Assembly (NCBI GenBank): GCA_965285935.1
Contig: OZ260666.1
Location: 50,902,001-50,966,000 of the forward strand
Direction: 5' to 3'
Length of the DNA: 64,000 nt
Source: Ophelia neglecta
Lineage: Eukaryota
Below, piece after piece: positions 1 through 49,900 of the stretch. The first letter of the stretch is position 1; every line of letters starts with the position of its first letter. The notes under the pieces were generated by a model that saw only the letters and a program-made list of their open reading frames with translations, had not been told where the DNA came from and did no database searches. Position numbers and translations under genes: made by a program.

Positions 1-1689
1 GAATGTGTAGATAGTAAAAATATGGCCCCAGGAAATATTGGAGTTTTGTTTGGAAGTTTATACTTTCTGTCTTTCCTATATGTAAAGACAACTTATTAAC
101 AAAAAGCCATATTTTCACACTGTCTAGATTAAAACTTAGCAGTCAAGGCGTCTTATTTACAAACCTTGACGTCACTGAAGCTCTGGACAATCTGGCTTCA
201 TCCTGACCTGGACCCAGCCATCTCACATGGCAGAATAATCTGCTGCCGGAGTTTACTTGACTAATGTTCAACCCCTTGTTTCTTCCAGAAGTTTCAGGAA
301 CAGCCAACGCGAGAATGCGCAGGAACCATAGAGTAGGCCTATATCAGGGAGTTATTTGCCCACTTTGATTTCCCTCTTGTGGACCTAGTGCAGCTGATCT
401 TGATAGGAGCCGTTTTCTGCCTCCATGCCATCGAAGACAAGAGCAAAGAAGCGCAGGCCATTGTACCAAGAAAGGCAAGATTATGATTGGGAACATTTTA
501 ATGGTAATAATACTCAAGAGAATCGTCCGAGGCGTGCAGACCAAAGGGTTGAAAACTAAAACTCTAATGGACATTTAGATGAGACCTTGCATCAAGCCGT
601 TTGAATATTATATATATATATCGAAATAATCATTGGTACGTCTCCCAATCATAAACCAAATCAAATGATTACCCCCCCCCCCCCCCAATGACGATGCAGC
701 TGAAAATACCTTTCAAGTTGATACTGAAATATTGAATGATTATGATCAACCATGAACTATCTTTCTCGAGGTTTTGACGTAAAATAAACCAGAGTGGCAA
801 CTGTTCCACCCTAGAGAAATTAAACTATGTAAAATTATAAATCAAGAACTTAAAAAAATTGTTGAGTGGCTATATGTGCAAACAAGCTCTACCTAAATGA
901 TATAAATGAAGGTATTGTTAATCCAAGTGTTTAAAGGATACTTAAAAGTTAATGCGCGGGTCTGTGTCTTACAAGTATTGGTTTTGGACCTTTGTGTAAC
1001 TTTTGTGGAAAGAAATTTGTTTTCAACTTATTGTCCCGGCGTTCAGTGTTTATCTGTGATATGTTTGTCGACCGTAAAATGTCTTATTTATTGATTGGAG
1101 GTAAATATTAGTTCAGGGCAATAGGCCTAGTTGCTAAAAAAGACGCAGGCCTAATCCTATGTGACGGTGCTGGTGATTCTAAGTTTTAATGAACTTCCTA
1201 AGGGGTCTAGCCACACCTAGCCCTATATGCCTATTTTAACGCACCAAAATAACTAAACGTATGTCCTAGGACTTAATGGCTACCCCGAGAGGCTAGGCTT
1301 ACCCCCATGAGGATTGCGCTCTCTTGAACATTTAACGGCAGACTATGGAAATTGAGAATCTGAAAAAGATCCAGAGTGTGTAGGCCTACGCACGGACCCT
1401 AAACTTCTTACGACTCGACGCCGGGCTATGAAAGCCTCCTACTGGGCCTGGCACCTAACTCCTAACTAGGAAAATACGGCGTGCACAAACATCGTCTATC
1501 GACCGATATGGAGAAAAAAATTACCAGCATGCGGATCCAAATCATTAGACAAGAGTTCCAAAGCATCCACGCAACCTAGCAGGGAAGCGAAGTTAAATGA
1601 CTCATTGCTGGTTAACCATGACCTGCCAATCTCTCAAAGAATGGCTTGTTCTTGCAAAGCAATAACCACACTCTATCCGGCCTACGTCG

Positions 1690-2060
1690 CACTGCACTCT
1701 GACGTCAGGCTATCGATTTTCGGCTGTTGTCTTGGTAACGCAGGCGTCACGTCTGACGCAGGACGCAGGGCATGGCGCGAAAGCAAGCATTAGTTCTCAT
1801 TAAGCAGGTTTAAGCTGCCCGTAAATATCATTGTGCTAGGGCCAGATGATAGTCCGAGTTCCGGATTTTTGTTCCAGCAATGCAAGGCAGTGGCGAAGAA
1901 TTGGTTCGGAATACCGCGGATATGAACCAAATGCGAAGAAACATTAAGAGTGTTACCTATTAATTCTCGACTGAGGGTTTGCTGTCTTAGACCATGCCTC
2001 GTAAGGAAAGCAAGAAACTTTCATGACAGTGACGGTTGTCAGGGTGGATGACGTCAGAGG
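1690..2060. promoter_or_regulatory. CRE-containing CpG-rich element
   Basis: TGACGTCA at 1700 and 2049, plus half sites in GGCGTCACGTCTGACGCA at ~1743-1760. Confidence 0.5.
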
Positions 2061-46900: not shown

Positions 46901-49900
46901 TTCGTAACGTATTACATTTGTAGCATATTCAGTTTTACTGGTTGGTTGATTTTCATCAAGATGACCAGTAAACACGCATAAGTATCGTGTTTTAATCATT
47001 AAAACACGTATGTCGTGTGCAGACGAATACAAAAAAATGAGCGTTTCAAATGATGCTTAGCACTTTTCATCCGTGCTATGATGTTTAATGATATTTTTCC
47101 AAATATATAGCTCTGTAGCAGACGTTAATTTTCGCCATGTGTATGTGTTGTATAATATTGTTTTATTTTTTTACCAAGAAATAATCTTATTATAGTTATG
47201 CTCGCATTATTCATTGTGGTGAAGTGGTGTCAATTCAGTAATTTTTATTAAATAATAAAATTGATATTGATATTTTGATGTTTGTGCGTGGATTCATCAT
47301 TCACACTTCCACTGTCTCTCTCGGTATCTCAGTTGGCTGTAGATGTTATAAAATACTAGACATATATGATTAAGTGATGTATAGGAACAATACTAAATAC
47401 TATAGGCCTATAGGCCTACATACTGAATAGGTATCTTTTCCTATTTTTCTCAGCTAAACGCAATTAAGACAAGTTTTCAAATGGTAATTTAGAAAAAACG
47501 TTGCTTGATCAGTGACAAAGGATCAATGATGCCCTCTTCAAGTTTGCCTGTCCTTATTTTTAGGCGACGTACAATACCGGAAGTCCCAGTACAGGCCCGT
47601 TCGAGGTGCCGATGACGTCAGACGCCAACAGCTTTCCGAGTTCCTTCACGGACGCTATGGCCGCGTTTGCCAGCGATCCGGGTTTCTCCGGGGACGCTGA
47701 GTTCGGCTTCGACAATCTCCACGAGAGCATCAGCTCCTACACGGACAGCGGCACGCCACCCAGTGGACATATGACCAATTATCAGGACAGCGGCTTCACC
47801 ATACAAGGTACCTACATGTTTCAGAGCGGGGTCCCGCTCCGAGCTGAGGACAAGGCCCCGCCTAGCCAAGGCTCCCAAACCCCTCAGGCGCATACACCCC
47901 AGACACCTACTGGTCCAACAAACTCGGGATCCGAATTTAGCTACCCAAGGGAACAGACCAGTGTATCACCCACGCCATCTAGCGGACACTCGGAAAAATT
48001 CTCTAACACCGTACAGTTTCAGAGCTCCCAGTTCCAAAATTTCCCAGAAGAGAGCGGTTTTAACGTATCAAAACAACCTCAACAGACGACTTTCATGGAC
48101 ACCAACCAAGACTTCTTTCCCAAGCAGACTAGTTCGTTTCCCAGTGGCTTCACCCAGTCTCACCAACACGGCCAACCGGCCCTGGGCCGCTTCCACGGCG
48201 AACAGAAAGAAAGCATATTCCCCGGCAGCTTCCAGACAAACTACATGGCCGACAATAGACAGGGTTTTCAGGGTTACCAGCCAGGATTCTTCGAGACACC
48301 ACGCATGCCCGGCCCCGATACAAACTTTAGCTTTGCGGCAGGCGGCCAAGGCTCAATGTACCATGGCGATATCAACATCCAAATCGCCAGACAGCCTTAC
48401 TCCAGCACCGGTCTCTCGCTCTCCATCGGAAGTCCCATGACCACTGAGTAAGTATATACTCCAATCCGTCCATTTATCCCATGCACGTGGCAGAAGGATT
48501 GTGTTTAATTTTGTCACTTTTATAGGCTATGTAGAAAACAATTGACATTTTTCGATGTCTCGGATTTTCACAGGCATAAGCATATAGGCCTTGGGACTAA
48601 AAATGTCTCCTTTTTATTCATTGACATGATGTTTTGTATAGTGAGCCAAACATATTTGATTAATCAAAGTTTGTAATTCTTAGTCACATGATGAATTAGA
48701 AAAGAGTGCCGTTATATGCTAGTGAATACTCCCATTTATAGGCCTACAGTTTAAGCAGCTATATGACATATTTATTAATAAGTATCTGATGACTGATACT
48801 GTCAGTTAATGGGTGCACTTCAAACCGACCGCACACGTTTTTTCTCAGTAGGAATTAAAACAATGGCTACCTAAAACGATAAAAGCTAAGAGCAGAATTG
48901 TTGCTTGTAATACAATCTTCTTATTATTTGGTTTCATTTGTTTGTTAAGGAATACGTAACATTAGACATTAGCCCCCTCATTCTGCTTGTGGACTTTTAA
49001 GGGTTGAATTCATGTTCTAGTATTTCATGGCAATATGCGTGAAACCAGAGCTAAGCAATCACTACATTAGCACTAAGCTTAGTCGAGATAATCTGGCAAC
49101 ATTCTGATATATGATATTCATTTTGTTACAGTATGGACTGTGGCAAGTACCCACTTCAGTCTCCGGCGACGCCGTCCACACCCACCTCCACGCGCTCCTC
49201 GCCCCTGGGCGAGATGATGCCCCCGGGGCACGGCCATCCAGACCCGGGAAGCAAACTCAAGGAGAGCCTGTTGTGTGCAGTTTGCGGTGACAACGCTGCC
49301 TGCCAACACTACGGCGTACGGACCTGTGAAGGCTGCAAGGGGTTCTTTAAGGTAAACACAGCCATAGCCTGAAACCAAACATTTTATCACCCATTCGCTA
49401 ACCAATGTTTAAAGTCAACGTTTGAACTTAGTTCGTTGCGCCAATTTTCCCTATTTCCCTGTGTACTTATAAGAGACTTCATATTATTTTTTTTTTGTTA
49501 TAGAGAACTGTTCAGAAAGGTGCTAAATATGTTTGCCTGGCCGATAAAAACTGCCCAGTCGATAAGAGGCGCCGAAATAGATGTCAGTTCTGCAGGTTCC
49601 AAAAATGTCTTACTGTAGGAATGGTCAAAGAAGGTAGGCATCAAAAAGATCAACAAATCTGTTTATTTTAATAGTACTTAATTTGAACACGCAAAAGTTA
49701 TGCATGGTGTGTTGCCTTCTTTCTCCACGTGACTGGAAGTATTTTGTCTTAATTTAGTGGTACGGACTGATAGCTTGAAAGGCCGTCGTGGTCGTCTGCC
49801 CAGCAAACCCAAGTCACCACAAGAGTCGCCACCATCGCCCCCTGTCAGTCTCATTACGGCCCTGGTGCGCGCGCACGTCGACACTTCCCCCGACATTCCC

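Follow-up and report, generated by a model that had tools for sequence, protein, structure and literature searches.

Candidate alternative first exons converging on a shared coding exon of an invertebrate NR4A receptor gene

The window analysed here, a stretch of 64,000 nucleotides, carries on its plus strand a gene whose exon sequences identify it as a single-copy NR4A (Nur77/Nurr1/Hr38-type) immediate-early receptor gene of an invertebrate, and we give about even chances to a model in which four or five alternative first exons would all be spliced to one shared exon 2 (43771..43961, plus strand). Splicing of leader exon B (ATG 40900) to exon 2 would plausibly extend the receptor by 124 N-terminal residues, and splicing of leader exon A (ATG 35244) by 70 residues; ATG-free first exons at about 18.7 and 26.4 kb, and perhaps at 33.2 kb, driven by CRE or CRE/TATA promoters, would leave exon 2 as 5'UTR, with translation from the ancestral ATG 43941 (MLLLQAQ). 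The model rests on the coding constraint in exon 2, on the fact that exons A and B are conserved together with their phase-1 donors and on the enrichment of CREs, all of them demonstrated at the level of the DNA. The original prediction had envisaged up to eight promoters feeding the gene and exchanging the N-terminus of its product. Its core idea of several 5' exons joined to acceptor 43771 with a changed N-terminus stands, exons A and B being conserved and ending in phase 1, but the eight promoters do not, and three N-termini (+124 aa, +70 aa, MLLLQAQ) with four to five first exons appear plausible instead. What we present is, on good grounds, a refinement of a gene model and no new mechanism.

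The ligand-binding-domain exon found its top matches in the structures of Drosophila HR38 and NR4A2/1/3 (E-values from 2.6e-27 to 1e-12), clearly apart from other receptor families (2.6e-27 for HR38, 1pdu, and 7.6e-24 for NR4A2 vs 4e-6 for RAR). The C4 zinc-finger DNA-binding domain is nearest to NR4A members, with NR4A2 and NR4A1/NGFI-B as the top PDB sequence matches of its exon; the Pfam matches in the gene are zf-C4 (E 3.6e-12) and Hormone_recep. These searches were performed with single exons as queries. The AF-1 (A/B domain) exon with its phase-0 acceptor (47564..48447) is followed on the plus strand by the DNA-binding-domain exons (49132-49351 and 49504-49633), further coding exons (49758-49918, 50036-50238 and 50466-50644) and the final coding exon (50867-51123), the ligand-binding domain and the stop falling within these remaining exons at 49132..51123. 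The AF-1 exon is present in one copy in the genome and shares 61-67% identity with P0001 of a related species; a word search with this exon returned the genomic P0001 as the sole relative and no transcript-derived protein, and a JGI metagenome scan for further relatives returned none.

Exon 2 is coding over its full length, including the part upstream of ATG 43941, both in the window and in the related species. In agreement with the original prediction, the NR4A frame is its sole stop-free frame, which holds in both species; the three indels between them are of 3 nt each, the differences at the three codon positions number 15/12/24, with an excess at the third position, and the peptides are 63% identical. 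Since exon 2 codes along its whole length, a start codon must lie upstream and feed the phase-1 acceptor. ATG 43941 is the only ATG of exon 2 in both species and has a good start context; the vertebrate NR4A N-terminus MPCVQAQ shares with MLLLQAQ the motif M-x-x-x-QAQ, which we take to be homologous. It is plausible from these sequences that exon 2 has a dual use, serving as 5'UTR with ATG-free first exons and as coding sequence with leader exons A or B. When 1.84 billion proteins were searched with an HMM profile built from the exon-2 peptide, no relative emerged, so that the extension is either lineage-restricted or unsampled.

At least two 5' exons with donors of their own are phase-compatible with this one acceptor: exons A and B end in phase 1, acceptor 43771 is in phase 1, and all of this is kept in the second species. 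Coding leader exon A (35244..35283, plus strand) comprises 13 codons (MCNLKDADTEPFS) and 1 nt before the donor GG/GTAAGT. The related species retains its ATG, donor, phase and length (MCNLKDTDSEQFS) within a 53-nt block of 81% identity that runs from the ATG to just past the donor, the number of codons (13) and the phase (1) agreeing between the two species, and a conserved 11-mer with a CRE half-site, GTCATTGACGG (35076..35086, plus strand), lies about 160 nt upstream of the ATG. Coding leader exon B (40900..41101, plus strand) has 67 codons and 1 nt and ends in phase 1 at the strongest donor in 44 kb (CAG/GTGAGT, 12.2 bits). Both its start (the ATG and first 11 residues, MS-WS--EFPP) and its end (GY-PRRH--P, adjoining the phase-1 donor) are kept in the related species; the middle carries two frame shifts in the related contig, which is of 3x coverage, and these could be either assembly errors or real decay. 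Splicing of exon A to exon B at 40894/40895 would likewise be in frame.

The donors on which the original prediction was built are all GT donors with usable scores, namely 6.4 bits at 2355, 8.2 at 4897, 10.7 at 4911, 11.0 at 18837, 9.8 at 22258, 11.0 at 26499, 10.4 at 35284, 12.2 at 41102 and 8.6 at 45195. The phases it gave were likewise reproduced: ATGs 2330, 4860, 35244 and 40900 are open to their donors in phase 1, ATG 4860 to donor 4911 and ATG 45120 to donor 45195 in phase 0, and the stretches at 18.7 and 26.4 kb are without ATG. Its own caution was that a donor with a phase-compatible ATG often arises by chance. In positions 1-43770, 29 donors of at least 8 bits lie on the plus vs 27 on the minus strand, and 12 vs 12 at 9.5 bits or more; phase-1 pairs of ATG and donor at 8 bits number 9 vs 4. 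Since the minus strand is just as rich in donors of equal quality, most of the donor list is by itself at chance level. About half of the eight promoters are supported, and the sites at 2330, 4860 and 22258 amount to a chance-level donor and nothing more, the ATG/donor pairs 2330-2354 and 4860-4896/4910 (plus strand) being present without support beyond chance. Alignment of the orthologous locus, which the original prediction had proposed as a check, retained the ATG and phase-1 donor of exons A and B; the candidate phase-0 exon 45120..45194 (plus strand) lies in the intron that separates exon 2 from the AF-1 exon, and the orthologous intron shows no conservation of it. The statement that the upstream region harbours no other gene holds in so far as 1-43 kb contains no non-repetitive ORF longer than 110 aa, a survey less rigorous than a gene search.

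The presumed CpG islands are GC-rich patches (14 in 44 kb vs 1 in the flanking 60 kb) inside one CpG-preserved domain of at least 67 kb, the CpG o/e being 0.7-1.0 between about -3 kb and 64 kb vs 0.12-0.5 in the preceding 56 kb. They are not short CpG-rich islands amid locally CpG-depleted DNA, as in vertebrates, and the vertebrate-style reading of them as island promoters does not fit here.

Perfect CRE palindromes (TGACGTCA) are enriched over both local and genomic background, as in a CREB-target locus: the window contains 13 vs 0.62 expected from dinucleotide shuffles, the genome-wide density is 1.4 per 64 kb, and the next 60 kb upstream contain one. Eleven of them form a field at 167..28614 (positions 167, 1700, 2049, 8579, 8758, 9028, 15397, 18617, 18637, 26309 and 28607) in unrelated sequence contexts, for which reason a repeat origin was rejected. 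Of CRE-like sites there are 31 in the window and 15 in the 28-kb ortholog, as opposed to 2 in the flank. The claim of ATG-less exons at 18.7 and 26.4 kb gained good sequence-statistical support from CRE spacing, ATG-free stretches and donor scores. The candidate CRE/TATA promoter with a putative non-coding first exon at 18617..18836 (plus strand) has two full CREs 20 nt apart, TATATAC at 18672 and an ATG-free stretch from 18690 to the donor AAG/GTAAGC at 18837; the candidate CRE-driven non-coding first exon at 26309..26498 (plus strand) has a full CRE at 26309 followed by the donor TAG/GTAAGT at 26499. These two donors are the top-scoring upstream ones listed, each with a full CRE 190-200 nt upstream, and among the 24 donors that score 9.5 bits or more on either strand only they follow an ATG-free stretch of at least 150 nt (155 nt at 18837 and 387 nt at 26499), the thresholds for this donor, CRE and ATG-free argument having been set after the data were inspected. 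The motifs upstream of the candidate exons are CRE-CRE-TATA at 18.7 kb, a CRE at 26.4 kb and the conserved CRE half-site at exon A, and CRE+TATA modules as such show no strand bias (4 on the plus vs 3 on the minus strand). One further CRE-like/TATA module (33133..33344, plus strand), absent from the original prediction and cut off by an assembly gap, consists of the CRE-like TGACGTCT, TATAAAA at 33217 and GCAGACGG at 33291; the related contig has the same motif order and a donor 2.3 kb upstream of its mini-exon, and the two modules, having no alignable similarity, are analogous only. For the remaining CRE-rich patches, at 0.2-2, 8.6-9, 15.4 and 28.6 kb, a role as CREB-responsive enhancers is more likely than one as promoters. 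A bacterial promoter scan was uninformative for this animal genome.

Another short motif, GCAGACGA (consensus R-GCAGACGA-C-M), occurs in 13 copies on both strands at 17232..49799 vs 0.83 expected, with 16 copies in the 28-kb ortholog, thus 29 in 92 kb; 6 copies lie left of the assembly gap and 7 right of it vs 2 in the next 60 kb. Some sites fall in or next to the exons at 18.7, 26.4, 35.2 and 40.9 kb, and a conserved non-coding element (38278..38870) contains the motif as well; among dispersed 8-mers at the locus R-GCAGACGA-C ranks first in the related species and second in the window. A repeat origin was rejected here as well, the flanks being unrelated. The unbiased 8-mer scan was topped by TAGGCCTA, which was discarded as a palindrome abundant genome-wide and not specific to the locus. 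A literature search found the exact 9-mer of the motif in no paper. The conserved element, whose 42-nt core (38759-38800) is identical in both species, is probably an enhancer; an RNA gene was rejected in view of the lack of an Rfam match above noise and a fold z-score of -0.8. Somewhat speculatively, and with rather little probability, the dual-use exon 2, three promoter-chosen N-termini, the 28-kb CRE field and R-GCAGACGA-C as a new cis-motif might together constitute an elaborate stimulus-integrating locus. The previously undescribed motif would then mark the candidate first exons and be bound by a second regulator of immediate-early transcription.

It is possible, if on balance doubtful, that the gene has just two promoters and no alternative first exons besides A and B, and that the CRE field at 0-29 kb consists of distal CREB-responsive enhancers which possibly make enhancer RNAs, donors 18837 and 26499 being unused for NR4A mRNA. 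Scattered activity-regulated enhancers that contain CREs are a familiar feature of immediate-early genes; Arc is quoted as an example in PMC6140108. The equal density of donors on the two strands and the lack of strand bias of the modules agree with such an arrangement, as does the fact that conservation was demonstrated for exons A and B only. However, CRE-CRE-TATA at 18617-18677 is classical promoter grammar, donors 18837 and 26499 both have a full CRE 190-200 nt upstream and close ATG-free stretches of unusual length, and ATG 43941, in good context and alone in exon 2, fits the first AUG of some transcripts. We consider it unlikely that one upstream promoter, e.g., the 33.2-kb TATA module, drives serial splicing of A to B (entered at 40895) and on to exon 2, giving one long N-terminus. 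The phase 1 of exon A would be continued by the conserved GCAG/AC GAG ATG at 40891-40902, and the related species has a plausible acceptor, a pyrimidine run with TAG, two bases before the exon-A ATG; yet a pyrimidine tract before 40895 is missing in both species, exon A is not preceded by an AG in the window, GCAGACGA occurs dispersed on both strands and is not an acceptor, and exons A and B each have their own ATG at the very start of the conserved block.

Between the CRE field and the conserved exons lies the assembly gap at 33345..33480. It is crossed by no proposed exon or reading frame, so that the continuity of frames is not in question. A wrong scaffold join at this point, by which the CRE-rich 33 kb on the left would not belong beside NR4A and the array would be partly an artefact, is quite improbable. 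All 11 upstream CREs do lie left of the gap and all conserved exons right of it, and the conservation comparison involves one related species, whose contig aligns only right of the gap and gives no alignment on the left; against this, the locus-specific GCAGACGA is enriched to the left as well as to the right of the gap, CpG preservation runs through it without interruption, and the related species has CRE-like/TATA modules upstream of exon A in one unbroken contig. The full set of about eight promoters, including 2330, 4860, 22258 and 45120, with first exons spliced to 43771 or 47564, is hardly credible: its sites all exist in the phases given and CREs 1700 and 2049 do precede the 2330 site, but donor/ATG pairs are expected by chance, donor 2355 reaches just 6.4 bits, and 45120-45195 lacks conservation. 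In the model of four or five first exons formulated above, all transcription starts, all splice junctions and the stimulus dependence are inferred.

Among the activity-induced transcription factors of animals, the NR4A/Hr38 proteins are the most widely shared, and their output depends on the N-terminal AF-1. In BDNF-type genes several 5' exons with their own promoters are spliced to one common exon, and one 5' exon with its own ATG lengthens the product. The arrangement proposed here is similar in its spaced 5' exons, in donors converging on one acceptor and in CRE-containing promoters, and differs in that the choice would alter the transactivation domain rather than, as in BDNF, the signal-peptide region, and in that only 4-5 candidate exons are supported. 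In EcR-A/B1, RAR, ROR, E75 and HNF4A P1/P2, alternative first coding exons replace or extend AF-1 on a constant DNA-/ligand-binding body, whereas the variable parts here precede a complete conserved AF-1 with the ancestral start and replace nothing (EcR isoforms are cited in PMC6140108). Insect Hr38, activity-induced in the brain and with several named isoforms (PMC6140108 names DHR38-D), is an ortholog-level relative and gives the best structural-sequence match of the ligand-binding-domain exon (1pdu), but the profile search of 1.84 billion proteins found no sequence similarity to the exon-2 extension there. Vertebrate NR4A1/NR4A2/NR4A3 belong to the same receptor family; mouse NR4A2 has a CRE/TATA promoter and a 5'UTR across the first two exons (PMC12471074), and for human NR4A1 and NR4A2 transcription from distant alternative promoters is reported under acute stress (PMC9308330). 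The CRE/TATA promoter with non-coding leading exons has its counterpart here in candidates only. Unlike in vertebrates, the exon with the ancestral ATG is also coding upstream of that ATG, the receptor would gain 70 or 124 residues from the two conserved ATG exons further upstream, and perfect CREs are scattered along 28 kb and not concentrated in a single proximal promoter. If promoter choice is coupled to the three N-termini, promoter-dependent receptor variation would occur also outside vertebrates and insects, and the model, if true, names specific exons and junctions for experiments; the CRE field with the unexplained GCAGACGA motif maps the regulation of an invertebrate immediate-early gene in a compact form that is open to testing.

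The three public runs, derived from one sample and none recorded as RNA, cover 40500-46499 with even depth across introns and no joints, and for these reasons are considered to be DNA. In exon B, the sole difference among those listed for the three runs is 41065 C>T (His56Tyr).

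The nuclear-receptor coding exons span 43771-51123 of the window and comprise exon 2 (43771-43961; phase-1 acceptor), which holds ATG 43941 (MLLLQAQ), the A/B-domain exon, termed the AF-1 exon (47564-48447), and the remaining coding exons at 49132-49351, 49504-49633, 49758-49918, 50036-50238, 50466-50644 and 50867-51123, the limits being set by splice sites and by the contig of one related species. This contig was reached via the AF-1 exon (P0001, 61% identity), which occurs once in the 762-Mb genome. In homology searches, run exon by exon, the last ligand-binding-domain exon matched the structures of Drosophila HR38 and human NR4A2/1/3 with E-values of 2.6e-27 to 1e-12, far ahead of every other receptor (RARs, 4e-6). 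The top matches of the first zinc-finger exon were NR4A2 and NR4A1, and Pfam recognized zf-C4 and Hormone_recep in the coding exons. The AF-1 exon also contains a perfect cAMP-response element (CRE) at 47613-47620 (codons P-M-T-S-D), retained in the relative, where a 90-nt stretch around the acceptor of this exon holds three CREs (L001 10119, 10180 and 10200); the site may be either an intragenic regulatory element or a coding coincidence. Several called genes of the related contig (ENA ERZ25069296) carry internal stops under both the standard and bacterial codes, and these gene calls are unreliable.

Exon 2 is present in the relative with identical boundaries, the NR4A frame being the sole open one in both species. 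The three indels between the species are each 3 nt long, the differences are distributed over the codon positions as 15/12/24, and the two peptides share 63% of their residues. Judged by this comparison of sequences, exon 2 is coding over its full length. It has no ATG besides 43941 in either species, and, coding being continuous throughout, a start codon must sit in an upstream exon ending in phase 1.

Two candidate ATG-bearing leader exons of this kind, A and B, are conserved in the relative in collinear order. Exon A (35244-35283) lies in a block conserved from the ATG to just beyond the donor; it has 13 codons in both species, each time followed by a GTAAG donor in phase 1, and a CRE half-site 11-mer about 160 nt upstream of it is conserved as well. 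Exon B (40900-41101) possesses the strongest donor of the 44 kb; the relative retains its ATG and initial 11 residues as well as the GY-PRRH--P motif that ends the exon beside a phase-1 donor, while two frame shifts are needed in the middle of the exon in the relative's contig of 3x coverage. Either exon would form the junction codon GTC with exon 2, the predicted N-terminal extensions being 70 (exon A) and 124 (exon B) residues long. The public sequencing runs on record include no RNA run, and the three mapped on 40500-46499 displayed even intron depth and no joints, and are thus DNA. Among the differences listed from them, exon B has one, 41065 C>T (His56Tyr, the relative's state), and exon 2 none, as against dozens in the adjoining intron; this scarcity weakly supports constraint on both exons.

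The window contains 13 perfect CREs, where dinucleotide shuffles predict 0.62 and the density of the whole genome 1.4, and the next 60 kb upstream contain one; 11 of the 13 lie within 167-28607 in unrelated contexts. Among the 24 strongest donors of both strands, an ATG-free stretch of at least 150 nt ends only at 18837 (155 nt) and 26499 (387 nt), and a full CRE precedes these two donors, and no others of the set, by 190-200 nt, donor 18837 being preceded by CRE, CRE and TATATAC. Since these thresholds were picked after inspection of the data, we grade the two only as good candidates, on sequence features, for donors of non-coding first exons. A further module at 33133-33344, with a CRE-like site, TATAAAA and GCAGACGG in this order, runs into the assembly gap; the relative's exon A is preceded, at 2.3 kb, by the same motif grammar and a donor, the two modules having no alignable similarity.

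Most likely, several promoters would all feed exon 2. ATG-free first exons would use it as a leader, with translation from the ancestral ATG 43941, and exons A and B would lead to its read-through, extending AF-1; the remaining CRE patches are probably enhancers. The full model of the original prediction, in which up to about eight promoters form a multi-exon array, is a rival to this reading. All of its donors, ATGs and phases are present as described; the donor list by itself does not exceed chance, the + strand being not enriched in donors (29 versus 27 on the - strand at 8 bits or more, 12 versus 12 at 9.5 bits or more). Exons A and B of the array are conserved, but the other ATG-bearing members and 22258 found no support: 2330, 4860 and 22258 show chance-level features only, and the exon at 45120-45195 has no conserved counterpart in the orthologous intron of the relative. 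A narrower rival admits two promoters only. Exons A and B might also be spliced in series, which would keep the frame, but a pyrimidine tract is lacking.

A different rival to promoters converging on exon 2 is a wrong join of the scaffold at the gap (33345-33480). As no proposed exon or reading frame crosses the gap, frame continuity is not at issue; adjacency of its flanks matters because the upstream CREs all lie to the left and the conserved exons, like the entire alignment with the related contig, to the right. Adjacency is supported indirectly by CpG preservation continuing across the gap, by enrichment of the locus-specific 8-mer GCAGACGA on both sides, and by the CRE-like/TATA modules upstream of exon A on one unbroken contig of the relative.

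Promoter-dependent isoforms of the A/B domain are classical among nuclear receptors. NR4A2 is documented to have CRE/TATA promoters and non-coding leading exons (PMC12471074); human NR4A1 and NR4A2 are reported to use distant alternative promoters (PMC9308330), and insect hr38 to be induced by activity (PMC6140108). The layout of the locus thus falls within an already known kind, its most particular trait being the proposed dual use of exon 2.

Some 3 kb before the window start, the CpG observed/expected ratio changes sharply, from 0.12-0.5 in the preceding 56 kb to 0.7-1.0 as far as position 64 kb. The GC-rich patches taken for CpG islands all lie inside this one CpG-preserved domain, and the entire NR4A locus thus looks like a single large valley, probably unmethylated in the germline. 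Tandem repeats at 6458-6898, 15891-16447 and 27486-27863 explain some of the patches and produce long spurious ORFs on both strands; a short interspersed repeat, roughly 180 nt long, lies at 14453-14649 and recurs many times on several chromosomes at 83-86% identity. On the + strand about 29.9 kb upstream of the window start (L006), in CpG-depleted DNA, an ORF whose cysteine pattern resembles that of LDL-receptor class A probably belongs to the upstream neighbour gene.

The motif GCAGACGA (consensus R-GCAGACGA-C-M) occurs at 13 sites in the window (17232-49799; 0.83 expected), at 16 in the 28-kb related contig and at two in the flanking 60 kb. The copies occupy either strand, their contexts being unrelated, and the motif ranks first among dispersed 8-mers in the relative and second in the window; a 9-mer derived from it occurs genome-wide about once per 62 kb. 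No mention of it was found in the literature, and its AGAC core is reminiscent of SMAD half-sites or a DPE. Sites 38632 and 40891 are positionally conserved in the relative. An AT-rich conserved non-coding element at 38278-38870, absent from the original prediction, includes a 42-nt core (38759-38800) identical in the two species, whose AF-1 proteins are just 61-67% identical; it has no RNA family match and no stable fold. The palindrome TAGGCCTA is present in 69,501 genome copies, versus 3,592 for its reversed control, and at 16 sites in the window (e.g., 47400-47420); some copies lie within satellites of 40-bp period, and the palindrome is enriched in the related contig as well.
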